NCBI GenBank assembly: GCA_011109175.1
Contig: RDEW01000096.1
Location: forward strand, 1-64,000
Source: Dicyema japonicum
Lineage: Eukaryota; Animalia; Dicyemida
DNA length: 64,000 nt
Reading direction: 5' to 3'
Numbering within the stretch: the first letter of the stretch is position 1; each line of letters starts with the position of its first letter. The translations under genes were made by a program, and so were the position numbers. The notes beneath the pieces are model-generated. The model saw nothing but the letters and a program-made list of their open reading frames with translations, had not been told where the DNA came from and did no database searches. Shown here in pieces: positions 5,451-44,590 of this stretch.

Positions 5451-5603
5451 AACCTCTACGTGTTGACAACAAATCACCTATTTGAATGTCATAAATTAGC
5501 ACAACGTTATCTATAATGTCGGGACTGACCGATCTATGTGAAGGATGATTTGGATGTTTCTCCTAGAGGTACACATCATGGCCTCCCCTTCAAATATAAT
5601 GTT

Positions 5604-6124
5604 NNNNNNNNNNNNNNNNNNNNNNNNNNNNNNNNNNNNNNNNNNNNNNNNNNNNNNNNNNNNNNNNNNNNNNNNNNNNNNNNNNNNNNNNNNNNNNNNN
5701 NNNNNNNNNNNNNNNNNNNNNNNNNNNNNNNNNNNNNNNNNNNNNNNNNNNNNNNNNNNNNNNNNNNNNNNNNNNNNNNNNNNNNNNNNNNNNNNNNNNN
5801 NNNNNNNNNNNNNNNNNNNNNNNNNNNNNNNNNNNNNNNNNNNNNNNNNNNNNNNNNNNNNNNNNNNNNNNNNNNNNNNNNNNNNNNNNNNNNNNNNNNN
5901 NNNNNNNNNNNNNNNNNNNNNNNNNNNNNNNNNNNNNNNNNNNNNNNNNNNNNNNNNNNNNNNNNNNNNNNNNNNNNNNNNNNNNNNNNNNNNNNNNNNN
6001 NNNNNNNNNNNNNNNNNNNNNNNNNNNNNNNNNNNNNNNNNNNNNNNNNNNNNNNNNNNNNNNNNNNNNNNNNNNNNNNNNNNNNNNNNNNNNNNNNNNN
6101 NNNNNNNNNNNNNNNNNNNNNNNN
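5604..6124. other. Assembly gap
   Basis: Run of N. Confidence 1.
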
Positions 6125-7042
6125 CGTATATAGTGAGCTTAACGTTGAGTAGAAACTGCCTTTTTAGTATCCAAGAAATGTTTTTACAAAGTTTATTTTT
6201 CGTTAGGAGGATAATATTCATTGAATGTCATGAGGTACTTGATACCGAGTAGATTGATTTGGTTTGTCGAGGAGATTATGTTTGTGTAACCGAATTGTGA
6301 ACATACATGGTGTAATTAGCAATTTTTTCCATATACTTGGGACGGTGTGCGTGTTCACAGAGTAATTGTATAAGCTTGTCAAAACCAATAACGTTTGGAG
6401 CCCCAAGTGTTTCGTTTTACATTGTGTGTTTTGATCCTTCTCAAAATCTTCCAAAAGGAGTTGCATGAACTCTTGTGGTAGAGGAATCTTATCATATTAG
6501 TCCATTCTGGTTTATATTGTAGTATTCGCCGTGAAATGAAGATGTTCCTTATACAGTCAATAGTTCCATCATCTGTTTGAACATATTCCTCCTAATGAGA
6601 GTAAGCGTATGTAAGCAAAGTTTGGGATTGAAATCTTTATATGATGAATTGGGATAATGCTTACGTCATTCTGCATAAATCTGAGGAAAACTGTCCGTTC
6701 TTTAACTCTATCATATTCGATTCCTTCCCTTATCGTTTTTGGAAATAAAATTCTGTCGAGACAAATAGCTGTGTGATTCAGTTGTCAACCAGTATATTTA
6801 AAATATAATAAATTCGAATTAATTAAAACCAATTTATATCCCTGAAAAAAAACCGATCAGGTTAGTTTAAATGTTAGTTTTAAACTCCGCAAAGACCAAG
6901 TACATTGTTACTGACCTTAATGACACTGCAGACTGAAATAAAATTATTCTAAAAGTCGGAATGCTGTTTTGTTTAAATATATTACTTTCGAACTTATAAA
7001 AGTTATTATTTTGAGAGATAAATAATTACCAACTTGTACTAA

Positions 7043-29199: not shown

Positions 29200-30300
29200 A
29201 GCATTTTCAAAACACCTGGATGTTCATTCTGGCAATGGTTGAAGGAATAAATGTCCCGACATTACTATCTTCAATTCTTCAATGGTGCAATCAGTAATTA
29301 GGAAAATGAATAACTCGTCCCCCCGCGGTTCAGATGACATCTCTATTCTCGAACTGAATCACCTGGGTCTTTCCGCGACAGCCGCAATGACATAAATTTT
29401 CAACTTCTCAATTAACGAGAACAAGATTCCGTCAATATAAGAGAAATCACTGATACACCCTATCCTGAAGAAAAAAACAACCAAACTTCCCGTCCCCCTA
29501 CCGACCGGTATCCATCACCTATGCCTTATCACGAGTGTTAGAAAAACTGGTCCTTCTCAAGATCTGTCTTTTCATAGCTCTACAACCTTTTCTACACGGA
29601 TTCTGCAAAAGACACTCAACAACAACTCATTCAACAAAACTGGTTCAATTAATTTTGGACGGCCTGAATACCCCAAATCCACACGAGAATCGTGCTGGTC
29701 TCAGTGGATGTGGAGAAGGCTTTTGACTCAATATCCCGGAAGATCCTTACAGCAAAAATTTTTACGACGTCGATCTACCCTAAGTTCAAATCATGTTTGG
29801 CTAACTTCATCAACGGTCAAATGGGCCAAGTAGTGGCAAACAACCAAAAATCAAAACAGCGATACTTTCCAAATGGAGTTCCACAAGGATTCTTCTATCG
29901 TATACGGATGATCTAGTGGTCGCAGTGAAACATTGAAGAATCTAGGAGGCGACACGATCCATGCAAGACCTACTAAACCAGAAGTGTTTTTGGTTCCTGA
30001 AGAACCGTCCGAATATATCAACAGAAAATTCACATGTAATGACGTTCACCTCAGCACGAAAATAATTACGGGCAGCACCACGAGTAACATTATATGACTC
30101 CCCGCTTCCCATTAAAAAAACCTTTTAAATCCTTGGAGTCATCCTGGATCCTCTACTCACATTTACCTATCAAGTGGACCTAGTAACCGCGAGAATCCAA
30201 AAGAAAATTGGAATCCTCAAATCGTTCACTCACTCTCCAGTATCTTTAGAGCTTATATACAAACAATTTGTTCTACCTAGAATCGAGTAAGCCTGTGCTG
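29200..30300 (+). mobile_element. RT fragment of a related APE-type LINE
   Basis: SSPRGSDDI, YRPVSIT, HGFCKRHSTTT, VDVEKAFDSI, NGVPQG. Confidence 0.75.
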
Positions 30301-31539
30301 CAGTTCAAAAAATATTTTTTCACTGAAAAAGTATTAAAAATATTGTCTTTAATTCTAGACCCTCTGTTATTAACAATATTTTGTGAGTTAAATTTTGGTC
30401 AAAGATTTCTGTTCCTTATCATCCCTTGTATCAGTAGAATAGCATAATGTGATAAATGTCTCAGATGCTATGCAAGGGCTGCTAGAAAAAGGAGCATTTG
30501 GTATTCTTTATTCAACAAGGGTTCCCATGAGTACAAAGTAAAGATAGAATCTTTCCTTTCGCTTGTGCAAATTGGGATTGTGAGATATTAGAAGATCATC
30601 GCGTCTGTGACAGTAAACTGAATACAATTAATTATTAACTTCTTTCTCGGTGATCCGAGGGTTTTAATTCGACCCATCAACTTTGATTTCTAATTTTATA
30701 TTTTTGCAGTTTAATTTTGTTCAAACTCATAAAGATGGAAAATGAGATAACAGTGAATTAGAATTACGTCACATGATCGCATCAAACAAATTGAGGTTAG
30801 ATGTGTCACTATTATTACCTTCTCTTAAAAAATTATCTCTATTACAATTCACAAATGATGATTATTGTCCTGGAACATTCCGAAGTTGTCCCAAACATAC
30901 ATGATTAAGTAAAAATAACTTACATCAAATCAGACATATTGAATAAATCTATAAGGAGTTTGTCTCTAAACACAAACATGGAATCAAAATTACTGATGAA
31001 AGTCACCAATGTGTACTTGTGCAACTGACGTGTGGTAGCATGAAACACATCCTAGATTGGAAAAGGATTCGGAAAGAAACGAGACGACTCACTTGAATAT
31101 AGAGAAATGGGAATAGGATGAGTGGGCTTATAGTTTTTGAAAGTCTCTGTCCTTGTAACAAAAGTAAAGAAAGTGACCAAAGCGTTTATTATCGAATCCA
31201 ATCAGATAACTATTAGAGAATATTATTAAGGAAATCAAAAGATAATGTAAACAGAATTTCACGAAAATGTAAATAATAAAACCACCATAACTAATTCTAT
31301 AAAAAACTATAACTTACGATCTCTGAATGATTCTGTTGCATGTATTATTGAAATGTACTCAAAAATAGAAAAATTATAATTTTTAAGAAAATAATAAAAA
31401 CATAAAACAAATTGGTGACTTACATATCAAAGTTTTGATTATGGGCAAATCATAAGTTATATTAAGAGTAAGTCTAATAGTAACGAAAAATTTCATTAAG
31501 CAAAGCATATTAAATCATTGCTATGAATAAAATGAGCGT

Positions 31540-31805
31540 TCAGGCGTCATTAGTGGGTGGAGGCATCCAGAAGGAGTCATGAGGGATATTGTAGTAAGTG
31601 GCATGTTCAGATCCTGTCGCGTTATTCAAAAAGGATTCCCTGTCCATTTCTGGGTGTAATTGGGACAAGGCCATGAACTGGTCTTCTGAATCGAAGAACT
31701 TTTTCTGTGCACTTTGTCTCTTCTTGAAGTATTGATTATCCAGAAGATTTCCAGTAGTAATTCTAAAATTATTTTTATTAATTTATACGTCGGGTTACTG
31801 GACAT
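31540..31805 (-). CDS. Putative 79-aa orphan protein, two exons (26-nt intron 31763-31788)
   Basis: ATG after an AT-rich stretch; splicing gtataaat...ttttag joins MSSNPT to a stop-free 74-codon exon ending ..WMPPPTNDA*. Confidence 0.5.
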
Positions 31806-32609
31806 TTTTTATAAAAAACGAATTTTGTAGTAAAATATTTTATTAATTTTAAAATTTATAAAAACAAAATTAATTTAATTTCTAATATAACTAAACTCAT
31901 TTTTTTATATCCTATCTAATAATATTTTTATATTTTTACACACAGGTAAATTATAATTTAGCGTAGCGTTGTGTAATTCACCAGTTCTGTAAGTATTGGT
32001 AACGCCTAGAGGGCACCTAATCTTCCTCCAAAGAGAACCATTAAACAATTACCTCAGAGAAAACTGTCTCTTCGGCGGCACGCGCTTTCAACCTCATCTA
32101 TCTGGAAGGAACCTCCAGCTCACCATATATTGGAACTGCTCTCTCCTGGAACTATGAACTAAAAAACATGGAGGTCAAAGCACAAAAACGAGATGGAAGC
32201 ATGTGCTCTCTTCGTTGAATAGAAATATATTTACTACTGAAATTTGGAAGTCCAATCGAGACGCTTCATAGAGGATGAAAGATCATTTGAGGTGGATCAC
32301 AGCCTAAAGGACTTAAATAACCTAATAAAATATTATGTGTAAATATTCCATAAAGACCATAAGAAGTCAGGTGTACTAAACCAAAAAGGATATGATTTAC
32401 TTTACTGAAACGACGTGAGAAATGAATTGAAAGCCATTAAAACAACCTATTCTAACGGACCGGATAAGATCCCAATGATCCTCTTAAATAATCTTGGGGA
32501 TAATTGAATTGTGCATTGACGAGAATATTGAAACACTTTACCCGCATGTGCAGCAAAAGAAACAAGGTTAGCTGTCATCCTTTTACATGCTCCCCTGTTC
32601 CTAGTCAAG

Positions 32610-35200
32610 GCTCTCATGTTGTCCAGGTTGTCGGCATTTTATAGATTTCTTTTGATATTGATCAGGTCTTTTTGCAAAACTATTGGCAGTGTTGTTCTAG
32701 GTCTTCCACGATAGCGGCCTTCTTGACTAACATAGTATGTTTCCATAGATATGTTCGGTGGGGATGTTAATTCCATCCTCAGCACGTGTCCGAAGGGCTT
32801 CCATCGGGATTCCAGTATTTCTAAGCTGATAGGTCTAGTGCTGCATCTCTTATAAAAAGCATTTTTCGATATTCTCGTAGGCCAAGTAGTTCCTGTTATT
32901 TTTCTCAGCTGACCTCTATGGAACGAGTCTAGTTTTTCCATATCCACTGATGAGGTCGCCCAAGTTCCAGCGTTATATAAAAGTACGGGTTTTATGAATG
33001 AGTCCCATTAACTTTCCGGGTTTTTGGTAGAGGTATTCTTCCTTGAGAGACCAATCGAGAACATTAGTGATCATTTTGGCTAGCTCCTTTGGGGCATGTT
33101 TTAAAAGTTTTTCTGGAATACTATCTGGTCTTGCAAATCTTCCGGTGTTCAGTTTTTTGATTGTTTGAAGAGTTTCCGAAACGGTTATTGGGTGCAATAA
33201 AGTGGATTTGTTATGTTTCGATAGTTTCATTGGGTAACCGGTAAATTCATCGCTGGTAAATTCATCGCTGGTAAATTCATCGCGAGGTAAATTCATCCCA
33301 GTTAAATCAAAGAACCACGTGGGCGGGTTTCTAGATAGAAGAGGTAGAAATTTTGATTTTTTATATTATAGTTAAATTGCGATTTTGGAGATTATTCGGC
33401 GATAGGAGTCACGTATCCGTGACGGTAGGACCTATGAAAACTGAAGAGAGAGGACCTATTTTTTCACCTCTCTTCAGAAGTTGACGTATGCCTGCCATGT
33501 ATTATTGGCGGGATCAATTTAGTTGTTACAAGCAGACGTTCTCTTTTGCGTTCCCTCCTTGGATTAATTACCAATGACTGTTTTTGCTAGGCTTACCAAA
33601 GATTGTACGCCTGTGGCTTACAAATAATAAAATAAGACTATTTAAAAGGCATTGCCTATAATTTAGCATTTTAGAAATTAACACAATGTTTTTGTTAATA
33701 ATTGTCATAAACTTGTTTTCTAAAAATTATATTATCATAAATATTCACTTAAAGTTTGACCTTTGTTATTAATCAGTAAGATAATCAATAATTTTTCTAT
33801 CACTTTAACCAATACACACACGTGTGGTGCACATCGTTGATTAAAATTTAACACTATTTGGAGAATTGAGGTTTTCAAATTTCTTCTATCTTGGGGATCT
33901 GGCCACGTGACTCATATCGTCAAATTAATCTCCAAAATTACATTTTAATGATAATATAAAAAATCAAAATTTCGATCTCTTCTTTCAAGAACCCACGTGG
34001 TCGCTTGAATTAACCGGCGATGAATTTACCAGCGATGAATTTACTTCGCGATGAAATTACCAGCGATGAATTTACCGGCGATGAATTTACCTCGCGATGA
34101 ATTTACCAGCGATGAATTTACCAACGATGAAATTACCGGCGATGAATTTACCTAGAACCGTTTCATTGTGTAGTTAATTTCGCTGTGCCAGTTGAATAGA
34201 TGATCAAAATGAGAAGCTATCATATTAGCTTTGTTAACGTTTCCAATGACAGTACAGCTGAGGTTGTTATGGACAGTGATCTGGGCCAAACTCCTCCCTC
34301 CATTAAAGAAGCGAATTGCATTGAACATTTTTGGTCCATCTTTATATTTCTTTATTTCGGAAATTTGATTTTCTGCTTCACTTCTGGCTAGGAATTTTTG
34401 TATTTGTTTGATCTTTGTTAGGACTCTGCCTCTCTGGGTGCGGTGCACTTATATTTTCGGATCGGAGCCTGAGCTCTTTTTGTATTACAGAAAGTCGTCT
34501 TATATCCGGACTGATTTGTTTGTGACTGGGTTTGGGGGTTGAACCCAAAACACTAGAGGCTGCTTTTTGTACTGGTAGATTATTCATAACGTAGTCTCTC
34601 CGTGTCGTATCGTACTGAGGCGATACCTTTGCGTTTTCCATGTATTCCACGAATTCTGTTTTGTATTAGCCGAGCGACAACAGGTTTGTGATTGCTGCTA
34701 GTTTAGAGTCTGCAATATGACCTCGAATTTTGCATGAGTGTCTTCTGATATTGCTTGGAGATAATTTAGTCAATTTGGTTGTATATTCGGATTGTGTTGC
34801 CTGATTTGTCTTTTCTGGTGCCAACCCAAGTGATCTTGTGTATTGGTGAGTGCTTGAAACAAGTATCACATAAGAGTAGGTTGAAGGCCGTGCAAAATTG
34901 TAGTGACTTTCCAGTGAGGTTGCGACGATTCCTTCCGTGTGCTCCAATGCACGTTTCCCTTGGTTTGGTTTTCCAGCCCAATCCAGTCCCCGGCGACAAG
35001 AAGAATGTAAGAAGACGAAAGTAAGTTGTATACATTCGTGAGTAAAGATAAATGCGTCCAGTTCTTCAATATTTGTTGAGACTCGCGCTCCGTTGTGGCA
35101 TATACATTTATAATGGAAATGACTGAGTTGATTTTATATCCGCATTTGATGTTAAATCTAACAGAATTCGAATTTTATTCAAAAAAAGTTGGTTCCTTGA
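32610..35200 (-). mobile_element. RTE-like LINE interrupted by the foldback element at 33233-34159
   Basis: HSPIHKITW, NQID, DSKL; NYTMK|LSKHNK continues across the insertion; GRFARPDSI; LDSFHRGQLR, RWKPFGHVLRM, GRPRTTLP. Confidence 0.85.
33233..34159. mobile_element. 927-bp Mutator/foldback-like non-autonomous element with 9-bp TSD and modular TIRs
   Basis: TSD gtttcattg at 33224-33232 and 34160-34168; both ends start GGT; 4 copies of GGTAAATTCATC at left and 9 inverted copies at right; a further ~125 bp of imperfect inverted repeat lies inside the arrays. Confidence 0.9.
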
Positions 35201-35219
35201 GACTTTTCCTGCCATTTTA

Positions 35220-36340
35220 GCTTTAACTAATTCTTCGAAACGTGGTTTTTTGTTTGCCAGTACAATTCTGAGATCGTTTTATGGGTTTAGTGTTCTTATT
35301 TTTTATATATAGTAGAGATGAAAATCCCCATTCACATAGACAAGTTGTTGCAAATGGAACCAGAACCTGCTTTTTTGCAAAGGTCGGAAACCCAACTTGC
35401 AAACCGCACCAAAAAACTTCCACAGAATTTGAGTTGTAAACATTTTCATTGATGCTTGCATTTCAATCAATAAGCTTTCAAAATGAATGTTGATTTCTGT
35501 TTTAATAATTTTATCAAAAGTGAGTTGGATTCAATAGTCATCCAAGGTTGGAAAATTATTGTCTTGAATACGTCGAGTCCACAACAACAGTTTATTCCTG
35601 AAGGCACGTAGATTGTCAGAAGCATTTATAATACTCATCCCTTTAAAGACTCAACTGGTTAAGATTATTGAAAATGTCACTTAAATATGCCAACAAATAA
35701 CAAAATTTGGAGATTTAAAACTATCAAGTAGTTAGAGTTTTTAATTAAAAATTGCTCGATTTCAAAACTGAGAATAAAAATCTTGTAAAAACACGACCTC
35801 TTGACAGCCATCTAACATAGGTATGATACAAGTGAACAGTGGTGTCAATACATAATGCTTTGAACAATCTATGATTCAAAGCCCTTCCACGAATAAAATT
35901 TACGATTTTGACACACGATTTTAAGACATCTTTTAACTTAATCGGCAGACTTCAATACGAGGTCGATGAAGGATACAGTGAGTAACTGTTGCACCTGGAA
36001 CATGTTTTCTCTAAAGGGCTGCAAACCCCGACCTGTTTCCCAGCATAACTGGAGCACCGTCCGTGCAAATTGACCATATAATTTCCAAGTTTTTCGAAAA
36101 AGTAATTTTTGCAGAGGCTTCCGTTTCGAGAAGTTTGCAAAAAAGAAACTCTTTTGCAAATGAATTTTCTTGTACAAAACGAACAAAGCCAGTTTGACTG
36201 CAATTATCAGCATCAGTATATTCATCCAACTAGATTGAAATCTTGATGCAAGAATTCTTATGTTCGAAACAACTTGCATATGTGTACAAGTAATCATGAT
36301 TTTTAAAATTATTTCTCGCACCCCTAGAGGAAGCCCTGTC
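35220..36340 (-). mobile_element. hAT-Buster (ZBED8/SCAND3-like) transposase remnant
   Basis: QLDEYTD..FVRFV..EFLFCK, SICTDGAPVMLG, VLVPFATTCLCEWGFS; frameshifted and partly deleted. Confidence 0.85.
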
Positions 36341-36395
36341 TTAAACCAAAAATATTAATAAATTTCAACTAATAAAGCAAAAATATTAAGGAATT

Positions 36396-38248
36396 TCATT
36401 CGTCGTTCGTTTCACGTAAAGCTATAATAATAAATACATCAACCAGCAGCCTCCAAAAAAATATCATTTATTTTGTTTATAAAAACAATGAGAAATGATT
36501 TTGCAGCGATTAAAAAGTTTTTGCTAAATTGGGATAATAGACAGAGTGAGTAAGTTGTTTGAATATATTCGTCATAGTTGATAAGTACATCCATCAAGAG
36601 GTCATCGCCAATAGGGGTATATAAATTTTCTATTAAAGCAGCCACACGCTGACTCACATATGACTTAATTTTATTAATCATGTTCTCCGTCAATTCTTCA
36701 ATGTTTTTACTACACACTTTATTCTCAATATCCGTAGATATAGTTGTAACACTGTGATGCATAAACAGAATATCCACGCAAATCTACAATAATTATAAAC
36801 TAACCATTTCTATAGACTTTCTGAGAACGTCCTCATCACATGTGTTAGACAACTCTAATTTACCTTCAAACAAATCACACATCTTTGTGAGTTGTTCTCT
36901 AACAAATTTATGTTGGGACTTTCCAACTTTATATTTATATTCAGTGGTAGTTGTATTTAAATCTAAAAGTCGACAAATCAGTTCGTTTATATCTTTATTT
37001 GCTGATGAAATATCATAGTTCAGTTCACTTAACAACAAGGGGGTAAGTTCTCCAAATATTTTCTTTGTTAATATATTAGCCTTTAGTCTTTGAATGGTAT
37101 CTTTGTACTCCTACTGTGAGTTTTAGATTTACTTTTATTATGTTGGTCTGATTTGGTATTGAGTTGGTAGCTACCATAACAGCTTCACATGCATAGGACA
37201 GAGTTGATAGAGTCTGTGAAATACACGAATCTGATGGGGATATTGTAGCTATGAATATGGTTTGTGAGGAACCACCCAAGGATTCCTTTAATACCCTCGT
37301 CAGTTTGCTCTCCCTTATATAAGTAAAAGTCCCAACCTGTAAGGTATATGCACATCCCCCTTTGCTAGTGAATTAATGACTTTTCCCAATACCAGTAAAC
37401 TTTGATTAATCCTCCCTGCAGTTAAAACATAAATTACCAATATTCTGTCTTTTCATACTACCAGTCCCAAACAAACCCACACAAAATAGTTTACCAATCG
37501 TTTTCTTATTAAAATTATTACCTCTTCTAATCACAGTCACGTTAAATATAGACTGAGACTAAAAAGTAGTGAATCCTCTACAACCTCATTGGCACGTCTG
37601 TTGGATATCCCTCGATGCATTAAAGAGAGGAAATCGCTCTTACTTTTGACATTAAATTCTCTGAGTCCCTTAGTGATGACTTTTCCCTGAGGTTATGAAT
37701 AATACTGACTTTGTTATCCTCAAAAAGAGTGACTTTGTTATTATCGGAGAACAAGTCGAATATTTTTTCATTATAAATCTCCATAAATGACACATTAACA
37801 GAAAGTAAGTTCTAATAATACACAATGCCAACATATCTGTTGTTACTACTCAGTAATAATGACATTGTTCGTGGAATAATGCCAGACAGTTTGGCATCAT
37901 CGATTATACCTTCCATTGTAAATGTCTTTCCTGAACCTGTTTGCCCATATCTCAATTATATAGAATGATTATAACGTGAATATCGTACATGAATGACCAG
38001 ACAGCATTTTATTTATGGCAGGTTTACCAATTGATGTAAAAATATCCCTCTGACTAGAATTCTCATCAAAGACTCTAGAAAATTTGTATGTCTTCACTGA
38101 GGATTTGTGGGAAATTTTAAGCATATTCGTATGTGTTGATACACATATACCCGTTTCGGTTGAATTAAGAGGTCTGAATAGTTAATTATAATTTACGATA
38201 CCTTATTCTCACAAATGAATCAATATTCTTTTTATTAATATTAGACAT
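36396..38248 (-). CDS. Kinesin-5 (KIF11/BimC)-like protein with degenerate switch I/II; about 11 exons
   Basis: Spliced: FVRIRPLN, YKFSRVF, CTIFTYGQTGSGKTFTMEG, GIIPR, VSFMEIYNEKIFDL, VITKGLRE, GRINQSLLVLGKVI, HIPYRESKLTRVLKESLGG, IATISPS, TLSTLSYA, IKEYKDTIQRLK; 21-28-nt GT-AG introns. Confidence 0.88.
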
Positions 38249-38454
38249 AACACAAAAAAGACAATAAGCGCCAATACGTAATTTTGTGTAATAGTTTTTA
38301 TTTATTTAAATTTAATAGTTTAAATTAAATGAATAAATGTAATAGTTTAATTAAAAATTCAACGTGCTTTCGATTCGGTGGCGTTAAAACTCTCTCGAGT
38401 TGGTAAAAATGTTGAAAGGATAAAGGAGAAGAGTCACTTGCGTTACCTGATGGT

Positions 38455-39916
38455 ATGAATATAATTCTTGCCATATCCGAGAGCGTTGTGGCAGCTGACC
38501 CAAAAGAATGGGCGAGGCAGGTAGTCCTGCAGGTACGTAGCAAGCTATCCCGAATGCCCTGGAATGGTTGGCCATACTTGGCTGAGCTCTACAGTAGCAG
38601 ATTTAGTACTGCTATATCTGTGAGTGAACTCAAGAAAATGACTGTAGGCAAAGAGGGTACTAGTCTAAAGGGGCGGGGACCAGATGACCACAACCGTCAA
38701 AGACAGCACGAGCACTAGAGCTGTGATACGTTGCAGCTCAAGCATGTTTATGAGATCTTAGCGCGGAATCTCGCTGCAGCGGCAGATGTCCCACTTGAGG
38801 ACCGTAGATTTACCCGCAAGATTCCTCATTGTAAGGTTAACGGAGTAGTGTTAACCTGTATCAATAAGGCTGTGGCTTATGCGGTGGAGACTAAACCAGT
38901 ATGGTCACTGGGTGATATCTCCCTAGTGCTGTATACAGCACAGATCACCTATGAGTTATTGACGGACATGCCCAGACCACCCAGTAAATGGAGTTAGTTA
39001 TGGTGGTTTTATTAGCTACAAGAAATTTGAGGCTGTAGTGAGACATCTCCCTGATTGGAAAACGACAGGTTTGATAAAGTTTATAATTTCTTTTTAAAAG
39101 ATGCACTTCATTACACGAGTCTATGTGTCGTGTATTACAGAAAAGCATCACTAACCCGGAAACCATTCCTGATCGGGCCTGCACCGGGATAACTTATTTG
39201 ATCCCAAAGCGGGACAACCCTCAGTCTGCTGCAGATTATCCACCGATGACCTGCATGCCAACCCTGTATAAACTCATGACCAAATTGGTGGTTAATGAGA
39301 TCAGGAGCTTTGTAGAAGCAAATGGGATTCACTCCGAGAATCAGTTGGGTACTGTGCGAAATTGTCAGGGGGCAAAAGGGCAGGCTTTGATCAACAAGTG
39401 CCTTTCTGTGTATCACGGAAACTCACTTTTGTCTATGTGGGTGGATGTGAAGAATTTAGTTGTTCATTCTTACCTTGTCGAGTGCCTACACAGTCTGTGT
39501 ATGCCTGTGTGGTTCATCAGCTTTGTAGTGGCTGTGATGAATTGGTGGAGTATTCATTGAACTATAATAGGCACCGAATAGGCGAGGTAAAACTAAAGAG
39601 GGGGATCCTTCAGGGGGATAGTATGTCTCCGCTGCTCTTTGTTCTCTGTTTGGAGTCATTGAGTCGCCGCCTCAATGACCGGTTTGAGCGAATACCAGTT
39701 CATTGTGAGGGGGTTTGTTTCAGTACAAATCACCTTCTTTTTATCGATGACCTAAAGATGTATGCTCGAACAGCCGAGGAGCTCTACTTCATATGGGTCT
39801 GTGCCAGGGAATTCTTTGAGAGTATAGGACTAGATTTGAATTATTCAAAGTCTGCGACTAACACGCAAGTATGTAGCGAGTTAGTAATAGTCATCTGGCT
39901 CATCCGAAGGATGTGA
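38455..39916 (+). mobile_element. R4/Dong-clade LINE, degenerate RT region
   Basis: GITYLIPK, YPPMTCMPTLYK, ENQLG, RGILQGDSMSPLLFVL, NHLLFIDDLKMY. Confidence 0.8.
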
Positions 39917-40059
39917 CAAATAGACGCCATCTTGATTCAAGGATATCCAGACTCAATGGTCTTGTATTACATATTTTGTATTATTATTAAGGCACTTTCA
40001 CGAAAGCCATAATGTTTATAGCCCCGCATGTGCAACACTCAAAGAAACAATATTTATAG

Positions 40060-42480
40060 TTAGTCTTTTCCATCTTCCTCTGTCGAATGCGAGTGATCTC
40101 AATTCGTCCAGGTCGTCCCCGTCTTCAGATTTTTTCTCACATGATTTAAGTCTTTGTTTAAGGCTGTCGGAAGTGTCGATCTAGGTCGTCCGCGGAAGAG
40201 TTTTTCGCAACTGCCAAAGTAATCTTCCATCGCTTTGTTAGCGGGTGCGTCCGGTTTCATTCTTAGTACATGCCCAAATAGCCTCCACCGGGCATCTATC
40301 ACATCCTTGCTGATGTACGAACACATACACTTATTGTAAATACCAGTGGTTGATATTCTACGTGGCCAGTCCATTCCAAGTAAGCTTCTTAGTTGCCTTC
40401 TATGGAACGAATCCAGTTTCAATAGTTCGTTAAAAAAACTTCCCCATGTCCCAGCGTTGTACAGTAGGATCGGTTTCACAAACGCGTTGTAAAGCCTGCA
40501 CCTGATGTCAATTCCAAGTCCTTTGGCCCTTAGCCATCCTTTCTTCAGTTTAGCCATTGCCGCATTTGTCAGTGTTTTCCTCCTTAGTACATCTTCAGCG
40601 TTTCCTAGTAGAGAGCCGAGCTTATTATTACGTCTCCATCTTTTATGAGTAATATCGTCTTCTCTTTTGATTTCCGTAATTTCAGTTTTGTTTACATTTA
40701 CGCTGAGAAACCATTTCTCAAGCTCCGCAGGTGCATTTTCTAGCAGGTGTTGGAGTGCGGTCACATCCCGTGATACAAAATCCACATCATCCGCATAAGA
40801 TGTCTCTTCTATGTCTCCTATATAGCATTTACGGAGGTCGCGGAGTGCAGATTCAAGGTATATGGTGAATAGTAAAGGGGAGAGGGAATCACCCTGGGGT
40901 GTCCCAATCGTTGTTTTGAAACTGCGGGAAGTTGCTCCTTGTGTCCTCACAGATAGTCTTGTATTTGCAAGTAGTAGTCTGATTATCCTAACCGACGATT
41001 CATCCAATATTTGCTCAAGCACATTCATCAGTTTCTGTCTGTTTATTGAGTCGAAAGCTCTGGAGAGATCTACTCCCAACACGGTCGCGAGAGATCTACT
41101 CCAATCTTTGGTGCGTTGCGCAGCGCCATCTGTGGCTCCATACAATGTCTGCCGTAGACCTCCCTTCTCGGAACCCACTTTGACTTTCTGGTAGGTATAG
41201 ATCCGCCACACCCTTTATCCGGCTTAGTGCAATGTTTGCCAGCACCTTGCGTATCGATAGTCTGAAGTCTCTGAGTGCCGCCTCCAGATATGTCACAAAA
41301 AGTACCGGTGACAAGGAATCTCCCTGCGGTACCCCGAACGTTGTCTCGAATAGGACAGACTCCAAATTTCCAAAACGTACACATAGCTGCGTTGTTTCAA
41401 GTAATAGACGGATCATTCTGACACTGTCCTCGTCAACCAAATTCTCCAAGATATCGAAAAGTCTCCCTCTGTGTATAAAGTCAAAGGCTTTGGACATGTC
41501 CATGCCAAGGATGCCAGTAGCCCCCTTTGTACTTTTGATGTGTTGCACATAGCCATCGATGTTCCCAGACCACATCAGCTGTAGATCTCCCTGACCTGAA
41601 TTCGCTTTGATTGTGAGAGAGAAAGTTCTCAATGTCAGTCCAATCCTATTCAGCACTATAAGTGATAGTGTCTTGCGTATAGTCGTCAATAGTACGATGG
41701 GTCTTAAATTCGTTAAGGGCCCTTAGCTTTGCCCGGTTTTTGTAGTGCAATAGTGTGCCATTACCCACATCAGGGGTGAGTTGTATTGAATGTTTTGTTG
41801 TATGTCTCAGTTAATAGCTCAGAGATCTCGGTCGGTGCATATTTGAGAAGTTCTGCATTTATGTTGTCAAGGCCAGCAGCTTTATTGTTGTTTAATTTGT
41901 CCAGGGATTTTTTTGTTTCCAGAATCATTATCGAAATACTTAGTTTTCGTGCTTCACCATCGAATTGTTTGATGTTTTCCCCGTGGTTTTAATTGAAGGC
42001 CAGCTGATAATGGCCGATAAAATTTCATTTTTGTTTAACATAGTCTTTCCAAACTGATCATGTGATTTTTGATGACTGCATGTCTCTATGTAGTAGGTGA
42101 ACAGTCTTGAACATCTGCGCTCCGTTTTTAAGCTTTTCTATTTTTCTTTAGCCATTCCAACAAGTTTATTTTTTAATTTTTTCTTTTTTATTTTCCTTCG
42201 TTCTTTTTGTTTTATTTTCCTTTATTTCCTTCGTTCTTTTTGTTTATTTTATAGAGGGTTTGGTTCCGCATGACTCTTAGAGTGTGCTCTTTTGCCTGGT
42301 CCTGACAGGTTTCGACCTGCAAACGTAAGTTCCTCTGCAATTTGGATATTTCTTCAATCTCGTGGTCATAGTGTCCGTTGAAATGCTTCGGTTTTACTCT
42401 AACTGTTGAATGGGCCGCGTACGCATCGATGGTGTCTTGCCACAGCTCCCCAGGTATTTTTTCTTTATTCCACTGTGATC
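40060..42480 (-). mobile_element. Two fused RTE-like LINE pieces (tandem RT cores)
   Basis: The first RT core ends at ..QGDSLSP..AALRDFRLS and is joined to IRKVLANIAL..QSGFREGRSTAD..DLSRAFD..QGDSLSP..YADD..RWRLFGHVLRM. Confidence 0.85.
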
Positions 42481-42619
42481 TTTTCTCTCAATGTATAGCT
42501 TAGATAATAATAATAACTTTGTCAAAATGTTTAATAACCTTTTCAAATGTTTAATAAAAGCCAAATTAAAAAATTAACTTAAAATTATAATTAATGTATA
42601 TTACCAAATTAATTGAATA

Positions 42620-44590
42620 TTACGGTCATGCAAGTGTATGCCCCAACATCCATTGCCAAGGATGACGAAATTGACCAATTTATTATGAATTTCAAGAGGC
42701 ACTAATACCCCAAAAGGACATAACCTACATAATGGGGGATTTCAATTCAAAAGTTGGGTGTATGCCACATACGGATATTGTGGGAAGTTTTGGTTTGGGG
42801 AAAAGAAATGATGCTGGGGATCGACTGGTCCAATTCTGTCAGGAAAATGGATTTCAGATAACTAACACATGGTTCAAACAGCACAAACGACGATTGTACA
42901 CTTGGACGTCGCCAAATGGAATGTCTAGGAACCAGATTGATTATATTTTGTGCGCCAAACGTTGGAAAAGCTCTATAACAGCCGTCAAAACATATCCAGG
43001 GCAGATGTGGAACAGACCATCAGCTACTTGTTGCAAAAATTAGGACGAAATTCAGTAACACTTGGAATACCCCCCGAGTAAAGAAATTCGATGTCTCAAA
43101 CATACCACCAGAATACGCAATGGAAGTTAAGCACAATATTGGATTACTGGATTTGAACGGAAGGATGCCTGATGAATTATGGAATGATATGCAGTTGGTT
43201 ATCAGGAAGCTGCAATAAAACATGTCAAATACAAAACGCCGGCCAAGTGCTCTGAGTAGCTCTCTGCCAACACCCTAAACATTGCTGAGGCTCGTAAAGC
43301 TGCTAAAGTCTCTGGGAATATAGACGAGATAAGAAAACTTAACTCTGAATTCAAAAAGGCTGCCAGGAAGGATAAAGAAGACTACTGGAGTTACACTGCA
43401 AAAAAATGGAAGATTACTATAAGAGAGGTCACACTAGGAATGCATATTTACAAAAAAGATTACGAACCCCCTTTACGAAAATGATGGGCAAAATCAAGGA
43501 CAAGGATGGTGTTGAATTGCTAGGCCAACAGAACATCCGAAATCGTTGGAGAGAATATACGGAACGGGTATATTCAGAAACTGTGTGCCCACTTATATGT
43601 GTTGATAAGCAACGTCGGGTGAGGGGCATAAAATCCTTGAGGAGGAATGCGTGTGGGCTACACGGCAATTAACGGGGAACAAGGCACCGGGGATTGACAA
43701 CATCTCAAGCGAATTGTTGAAGGCTATACCGGTGACAGCTATCACCAGTCTATATTAAAAAATTTGGGAAACTGGTATTTGGCCACGTGAGTGGAAAAGA
43801 TCTATATTTATACCAATACCGAAAAAAGGGGATAGCAAGGACTGTTCAAACTATCGTACAATAGCCTTAATTCCCCACGTGAGCAAAATACTTCTAATGA
43901 TAATACAACATCGTCTAATGCCAAATGCCGAAATGATTCTACCGGATGTCCAAGCAGGATTCAGGAAGGGACGAGGCACACGTGACCATATAGCAAATGT
44001 CCGTTGGATTATGTTAAAAGCCCATGAATCCCAAAAGAGTGTATACATGTGCTTCATTGACTATCGGAAAGCTTTTGATTTCGTTATTCATGACAAGCTG
44101 TGGTCTGCTTTAAAAGAATTTGGATTCGATGCCCATCTGATATTATCAAATCTCTTTATAAGGATCAAGAAGCTACTGTTAGAACAGTGTATGGAGATAC
44201 CGATTGGTTCAAAATTTGTAAAGGAGTAAGACAAGGATGCTTATTATCTCCTATTCAATATTTATGCCGAAATGATCATGACTAAATTGGATACTGTATC
44301 AAATAACGGGATTAAAATTGGAGGCAGGAACATCAATAATTTGCGTTATGCTGACGATACAACCTTACTGACTGAAACAGAGGATGGTACAACCATTATG
44401 CTGAGCAATATTACTGGGAAGAGAAGACCTGGCCGACCAAGAACTCGGTGGCTATCCACGGTGGAAGACGTCACGAGATTGCCTATGTCAAAGCTACTCC
44501 AAATTGCAACGGATCGGGGAGAGTGGAGGAAACTCGTTCATGAGATCTCCAAGGGTCGGACACGACTAAATTGGACAACATAACAAAAAA
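42620..44590 (+). mobile_element. RTE/BovB-like LINE with an internal deletion
   Basis: QVYAPT, MGDFNSKVG, GDRLVQFCQEN, WTSPNG..RNQIDYI, QAGFRKGRGTRDHIAN, FIDYRKAFD, GIKIGGRNINNLRYADDTTLL, GRPRTRW; 3' end gtcggacacgact at 44555-44567. Confidence 0.9.

Follow-up and report, generated by a model that had tools for sequence, protein, structure and literature searches.

In the nucleotide pocket of kinesins, as of myosins and G-proteins, Mg and its waters are held by the serines of switch I together with the aspartate of switch II, and the pocket is closed for hydrolysis by the salt bridge between the switch I arginine and the switch II glutamate; in kinesins, loop L11 and helix α4 pass microtubule binding on to this pocket. 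In all three groups of proteins, Asp and Glu of switch II, like Ser and Arg of switch I, are indispensable, a single substitution at one of them being sufficient to abolish turnover. Engineered kinesin mutants of the rigor type, in which the switch I Arg or the switch II Gly or Glu has been replaced, bind tightly to microtubules and do not hydrolyse ATP. The natural proteins known to have the kinesin fold and to be devoid of catalysis are few, namely Vik1/Cik1, KIF26 and Cos2.

In budding yeast, Vik1 and Cik1 are the non-catalytic partners of the kinesin-14 Kar3 (PMC4338441), with which they form a coiled coil, and they bind microtubules by means of a kinesin-fold domain that does not hydrolyse ATP. 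In animals, KIF26A and KIF26B, which belong to kinesin-11, are referred to as “non-motor kinesins” (PMC10585591) and are described as lacking motor activity, yet act at microtubules. Our literature search found no non-catalytic protein with a kinesin fold that derives from kinesin-5, the family comprising KIF11/Eg5, Klp61F, cut7, BimC and plant KIN-5, whose long coiled-coil stalk and C-terminal BimC-box tail are the basis of the bipolar tetramer.

The locus considered here lies in a stretch of 64,000 nucleotides of Dicyema japonicum DNA, hereafter the window, and is best explained, with a probability that we put at roughly 0.6, as an intact spliced gene for a pseudo-motor derived from kinesin-5. 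With this family the predicted protein has in common an N-terminal motor domain, the INQSLL.LG.VI helix α4, the HIPYRESKLTR sequence and a neck of the type IKEY...I.RLK, whereas it differs in having both switches destroyed, loops L9, L11 and L5 shortened and, without stalk or BimC-box tail, about 220 residues after the motor instead of about 700. The likeness to Vik1/Cik1 consists of a kinesin-fold domain that is predicted not to hydrolyse ATP and is an analogy only, for the yeast proteins have neither P-loop nor nucleotide pocket, carry the domain at the C-terminus and belong to a kinesin-14 context, whereas in the Dicyema protein the P-loop is intact and the domain is N-terminal and kinesin-5-like. 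KIF26A and KIF26B, signalling proteins of very large size, belong to a different family; by this description they are set apart, with no hint of orthology, and the Dicyema protein scores best with kinesin-5. Finally, the residues altered are the same as in the rigor-type mutants, with the difference that these carry single laboratory substitutions whereas here an entire block has been remodelled in nature.

Exons and very short introns

Translation of the minus strand in three frames between 38320 and 36300 reveals pieces of a kinesin motor that change frame every 100–200 nt, in each case at a short GT...AG stretch. The resulting gene model runs on the minus strand from 38248 to 36439 and consists of ten exons and nine GT-AG introns; the spliced frame, which begins with an ATG at 38248 and ends with a TGA at 36441-36439, encodes 532 amino acids without an in-frame stop, whereas the remaining two frames of the spliced sequence contain 37 and 65 stops. 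The coding DNA has a G+C content of 33% and, in the alternative frames, a stop occurs about every 10 codons.

The exons extend over 38248-38202 (exon 1), 38173-37976 (exon 2), 37950-37833 (exon 3), 37811-37710 (exon 4), 37686-37585 (exon 5), 37558-37438 (exon 6, of 121 nt), 37415-37337 (exon 7), 37313-37133 (exon 8), 37110-36805 (exon 9) and 36783-36439 (exon 10). They are separated by intron 1 (38201-38174, 28 nt), intron 2 (37975-37951, 25 nt), intron 3 (37832-37812, 21 nt), intron 4 (37709-37687, 23 nt), intron 5 (37584-37559, 26 nt), intron 6 (37437-37416, 22 nt), intron 7 (37336-37314, 23 nt), intron 8 (37132-37111, 22 nt) and intron 9 (36804-36784, 21 nt). A possible tenth intron, also GT-AG and 22 nt long, is found at 36443-36422 on the same strand; its splicing would change the C-terminus from ...EAAG to ...EAAALRETNDE and move the stop to 36398-36396. 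The preliminary description of this DNA had placed the end of the gene at 36396, which holds if the tenth intron is spliced and otherwise gives way to the stop at 36441-36439. It had also placed an intron at 37558-37583, where one is predicted here too, with limits displaced by one base, and the claim that the reading frame is otherwise uninterrupted stands, as the 532 open codons show.

Seven of the nine junctions were set by homology to kinesin-5, junctions 5/6 and 6/7 lying in a divergent block of the motor. In all 10 candidate introns, which are 21–28 nt long with 65–82% A+T, the acceptor is the first AG located at least 21 nt from the donor GT, and in intron 8 an earlier AG, found at 19 nt, is bypassed. 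This regularity played no part in choosing the introns and represents, therefore, an independent check of the consistency of the model. Among animals, introns shorter than 30 nt are known only from myxobolid myxozoans and from Dicyema japonicum itself (PMC13644364). Three other arrangements were considered and rejected, as each of them meets a stop, loses the β6 remnant or shifts the frame: a later donor, which would yield an intron of 33 nt; an intron 6 of 47 nt; and the skipping of exon 6.

A search for sequencing runs containing the locus returned four DNA-like runs of one sample (2019) and nothing else. Their Logan contigs cover 37302-37898 with zero differences and are unspliced, without joints; since they retain the introns, the runs represent DNA and the assembly can be regarded as sound at this locus. 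In one of these runs (X3) an alternative contig of equal depth carries about three differences within intron 5 (37559-37584). Splicing and transcription of what appears to be an intact gene are thus predicted from the sequence.

Switch regions and retained elements of the motor

The Pfam Kinesin profile (PF00225) matches the exons in a colinear fashion, its positions 27-79 falling on exon 2, 81-113 on exon 3, 125-157 on exon 4, 161-190 on exon 5, 255-279 on exon 7 and 281-324 on exon 8. Three of these exons are individually above the gathering score and, taken together, the matches cover profile positions 27-190 and 255-324, passing over exon 6. The latter exon, which corresponds to the region of switch I, switch II and loop L11, gives no Pfam match and retrieves no kinesin from the PDB sequences even at E = 10.

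Outside exon 6 the elements of a kinesin head are well preserved. According to both the Pfam match and the kinesin-5 alignment, the P-loop GQTGSGKT is intact at 37946-37923 of the minus strand, and the RxRP base-binding motif is present as VRIRPLN. The microtubule-binding elements, located between 37270 and 37413 on the same strand and interrupted by intron 7, comprise helix α4 (RINQSLLVLGKVINSL), with an intact INQSLL at 37410, loop L12 (HIPYR) and helix α5 (ESKLTRVLKESLGG), HIPYR being continuous with ESKLT across the intron. The neck (37069..37144, minus strand) reads NIIK before and EYKDTIQRLKANIL after intron 8 and aligns to the kinesin-5 sequence LIKEYTEEIERLKRDL, its segment NIIKEYKDTIQRLK being aligned to LIKEYTEEIERLK of KIF11. 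The intactness of P-loop, HIPYRESKLT and INQSLL, already reported in the preliminary description, is thus found in the spliced model, and the switch sequences given there (RRANE-SQSIF for switch I, and a switch II at 37460-37495) are likewise correct as stated.

Switch I reads ...NRRANE before and SQSIF after intron 5, with A187-N188-E189 and, beyond the intron, S190-Q191 (37553..37593, minus strand) replacing the canonical SSRSH, and this remnant is preceded by a 9-residue deletion in loop L9. Switch II reads GKLFCVGLFGTG at 37495-37460, where the kinesin-5 alignment places G217-L-F-G-T-G222 (37460..37477, minus strand) in the position of DLAGSE. It is followed by a shortened L11, SMKRQNIG (37414..37459, minus strand, spanning intron 6), which has 8 residues fewer than in kinesin-5. 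Thus, Ser-Ser-Arg of switch I and both Asp and Glu of switch II are replaced, what remains being one switch I Ser and one switch II Gly.

The extent of this remodelling was evaluated by aligning the spliced protein locally to a diverse set of seven kinesin-5 motors, including fish KIF11, S. japonicus cut7 and plant KIN-5. The block consists of 44 amino acids, compared with 64 in six of the seven references and 67 in the remaining one. Homology nevertheless traverses it, SQSIFNVTV being aligned to SHSVFSVTI, IGKLFCVGLFG to IGKLNLVDLAG and G-R-INQSLL to G-N-INQSLL. Of the 101 positions that are invariant in the seven references, 69 are kept, but their distribution is strongly uneven, with 7/26 (27%) retained within the block against 62/75 (83%) elsewhere (Fisher p = 4e-7). 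The remnants of the block, S190, F, VT, G211, L213, V216, L218, G220 and G230, occur in the proper order, an indication that substitutions and in-frame deletions altered the block, the remainder of the protein having stayed under constraint.

These data bear on the possibility that the gene model is wrong, or the assembly faulty, in the region of exons 5–7 and that the true transcript encodes normal switches, a reading suggested by the location of junctions 5/6 and 6/7 in the divergent block and by the fact that no RNA run is found for the locus. However, exons 5 and 7 are just 169 nt apart, a distance too short to accommodate the 64 profile positions (switch I, β6, β7, switch II and L11) that are missing between their matches and are represented here by 41 residues. 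Furthermore, neither S[ST]RS[HS] nor D.AG[ST]E is found in a kinesin context in any frame of 30000-44000, or indeed of the whole window, so that no exon encoded within these 14 kb or within the window could restore SSRSH or DLAGSE, the outcome that the preliminary description had named as contrary to its proposal. The β6 and β7 remnants of exon 6 are in the correct order (SQSIFNVTV, IGKL.V.L.G), the junction leading to G-x-INQSLL fits, the skipping of exon 6 would shift the frame, and contigs of four runs match the window. An error of this kind is consequently judged to be highly improbable.

As to the catalytic properties, with all of these elements altered at once, the protein is expected neither to turn over nucleotide nor to retain mechanochemical coupling. 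The view of a catalytically dead head, put forward before this analysis, is in keeping with the replacement of Ser-Ser-Arg, Asp and Glu and with the shortening of L9 and L11. An active ATPase or motor endowed with an unorthodox switch chemistry could be invoked, considering that P-loop and RxRP are intact and that each switch retains one of its residues, a Gly in switch II and a Ser in switch I; yet the essential Ser and Arg of switch I and Asp and Glu of switch II are altered all together, and L9 and L11 are shorter by 9 and 8 residues, respectively, which leaves this proposal hardly credible.

Family placement and tail

Relationships were analysed starting from an exhaustive HMMER search with exon 8, which retrieved 6,988 kinesins, 150 representatives of which were used for local full-length scoring. 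Among these 150, the best single-domain match is fish KIF11 (206 bits, 42% identity over 332 columns), followed by an unnamed protein (198 bits), cut7 (181), a “kinesin family protein 11” (176) and plant KIN-5 (175 and 167), the scores of cut7, KIN-5 and the other kinesin-5 lying between 163 and 198 bits. KIF12 scores 132 bits and the kinesin-1-, kinesin-3- and kinesin-4-like proteins 105–131 bits. Over the exon 8 piece the exhaustive search found nothing nearer than 67%, the nearest protein (P0013) having a normal DLAGSE, and a word-based search with the same exon gave fragments at 55–61% identity only, with no self-match.

A maximum-likelihood tree was built from 38 motor domains, a comparison set picked for its similarity to exon 8. 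All named kinesin-5 fall into one eukaryote-wide clade (SH-aLRT 95), to which the protein is sister (88); it lies outside this clade, on a terminal branch of 1.55 compared with a median of 0.58. Searches of the PDB sequences carried out exon by exon yielded kinesin-5 as the top family for exons 2, 7 and 8 and in lower positions for exons 3 and 4, the piece encoded by exon 3 preferring kinesin-1, because its loop L5 is short, and that encoded by exon 4 preferring kinesin-13; kinesin-5 is the sole PDB family among the matches listed for all five matching exons (2, 3, 4, 7 and 8). Loop L5 falls short of that of KIF11, cut7 and plant KIN-5 by 9 residues and is as long as that of P0054 and P0082, both of them unnamed proteins within the clade.

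Taken together, these comparisons make it likely that the protein is a kinesin-5-derived motor on a long branch. Its derivation from Eg5, as originally proposed, receives support from the best scores, the sister placement and the PDB families, but is tempered by the position outside the clade and by the length of the branch. Lacking a long L5, a long stalk and a BimC tail, the protein is not to be filed as kinesin-5 in the functional sense. No second kinesin gene is present in the 64-kb window. As a separate observation, three of the proteins retrieved (P0011, P0012 and P0037) contain two complete kinesin motor domains each, the two copies of P0011 being nearly identical, which may reflect either a fusion of gene models or genuine kinesins with tandem motors.

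The alignment with KIF11 ends at about residue 348, and the sequence that follows the motor is encoded by exons 9 and 10, neither of which matches any Pfam domain, including the BimC box, at E up to 1. Residues from about 341 to about 370 (36949..37038, minus strand) form a heptad-like stretch, a possible short coiled coil, whose crude a/d heptad score exceeds that of all 500 shuffles, and single-sequence AlphaFold predictions of exons 9 and 10 taken alone return helices of low confidence (pLDDT 48 and 44, respectively). The short coiled-coil tail that had been attributed to the protein is thus weakly supported, by this pattern of about 30 residues and by predicted helices at pLDDT 44–48. Exon 10 encodes a 114-aa, Leu/Ile-rich C-terminal region that is predicted to be helical (36442..36783, minus strand) and for which a word-based search found no homologue. 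In the ESM Atlas it resembles, with scores of 0.89–0.91 and low recognition, helical domains of tethering complexes (CCDC142, Sec6, COG4, Vps54 and syndetin), a weak lead, whereas exon 9 gave no usable match.

Selection or decay, and the predicted function

The gene is flanked by the remains of transposons. Reverse-transcriptase open reading frames are located at 39362-39916 on the plus strand and at 40099-41211 on the minus strand, and at 38360, 112 nt upstream of the ATG, the depth of the contigs leaves a level of about 30 and climbs into the thousands (267,430 at most, in X3), which marks where a very high-copy repeat begins. On the other side of the gene, immediately downstream, reading frames at 35938-36321 of the minus strand contain the stretch ...TDGAPVMLGNRSGF..., which we take to resemble a hAT-type transposase; at E values up to 0.01, Pfam gives no match for these frames.

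In such surroundings one could imagine a pseudogene, or a gene in the process of being lost: a truncated duplicate of the animal's kinesin-5 gene which has been deprived of stalk and tail, perhaps through the insertion of nearby transposons, which is now dispensable and which has not yet been hit by a stop or a frameshift. In line with this view are, besides the abundance of transposons, a tail without relatives, the long branch and the fact that the runs matching the locus include no RNA run. On the other hand, 532 codons have remained open at 33% G+C and each of the nine introns has kept GT, AG and phase. Furthermore, the losses are far from uniform, the catalytic block having retained 27% of the invariant positions and the rest 83%, as expected if the rest were under selection while the block drifted; this concentration of the loss, the weightiest point in the matter, argues for a selected pseudo-enzyme and not for a decaying pseudogene, which we regard as unlikely. 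Of four coding polymorphisms, those at 37096 (T321) and 37908 (G96) are synonymous, whereas those at 36606 (D478N) and 37904 (I98L) are non-synonymous but conservative, and the set does not lean either way.

If the gene indeed encodes a pseudo-motor, its product would have retained the kinesin fold, the pocket made of P-loop and RxRP, and the microtubule face (α4, L12 and α5), and would have lost all residues that sense the γ-phosphate and hydrolyse the nucleotide. The latter could perhaps still be bound at the P-loop, but would be neither turned over nor coupled to the movement of the neck linker, and the head would bind microtubules statically, without stepping, in the manner of the engineered switch mutants. 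The protein would probably pair through a short neck coiled coil, with the orphan helical C-terminus serving to hold a partner or a cargo. It is thus probably a non-motile microtubule binder, judging from its sequence. Absence of the stalk and of the BimC tail renders unlikely a bipolar tetrameric slider, and the earlier idea of a cross-linker or regulatory subunit, speculative in itself, is weakened for the same reason insofar as the cross-linker is bipolar. The protein could plausibly, albeit speculatively, serve as a brake or an anchor, or else team up with an active kinesin.

The literature search found no relevant link between Dicyema and kinesins, and the accessible part of the supplements to the genome paper does not mention kinesin. 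A natural kinesin-5 motor in which both switches are remodelled but P-loop and microtubule face are preserved would constitute a ready-made rigor-like variant, a motor head without turnover, and would bear on how spindle and cilia are built in a drastically simplified animal. A broader and rather doubtful extension is that this gene is one of a set, several motor families, including perhaps the sole kinesin-5, having been turned into static microtubule-binding proteins. If true, motors would have been converted into structural or regulatory proteins throughout the lineage of a parasite of roughly 30 cells, whose spindle would, by implication, be assembled without the ATPase activity of kinesin-5.

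With regard to the general composition of the DNA, the window is LINE-rich, with about 37% G+C, as against 29% in Henneguya salminicola, and contains a run of N, corresponding to a scaffold gap, at about 5600-6150; the assembly of Dicyema japonicum has 36.7% G+C and 49% repeats (PMC6736024).
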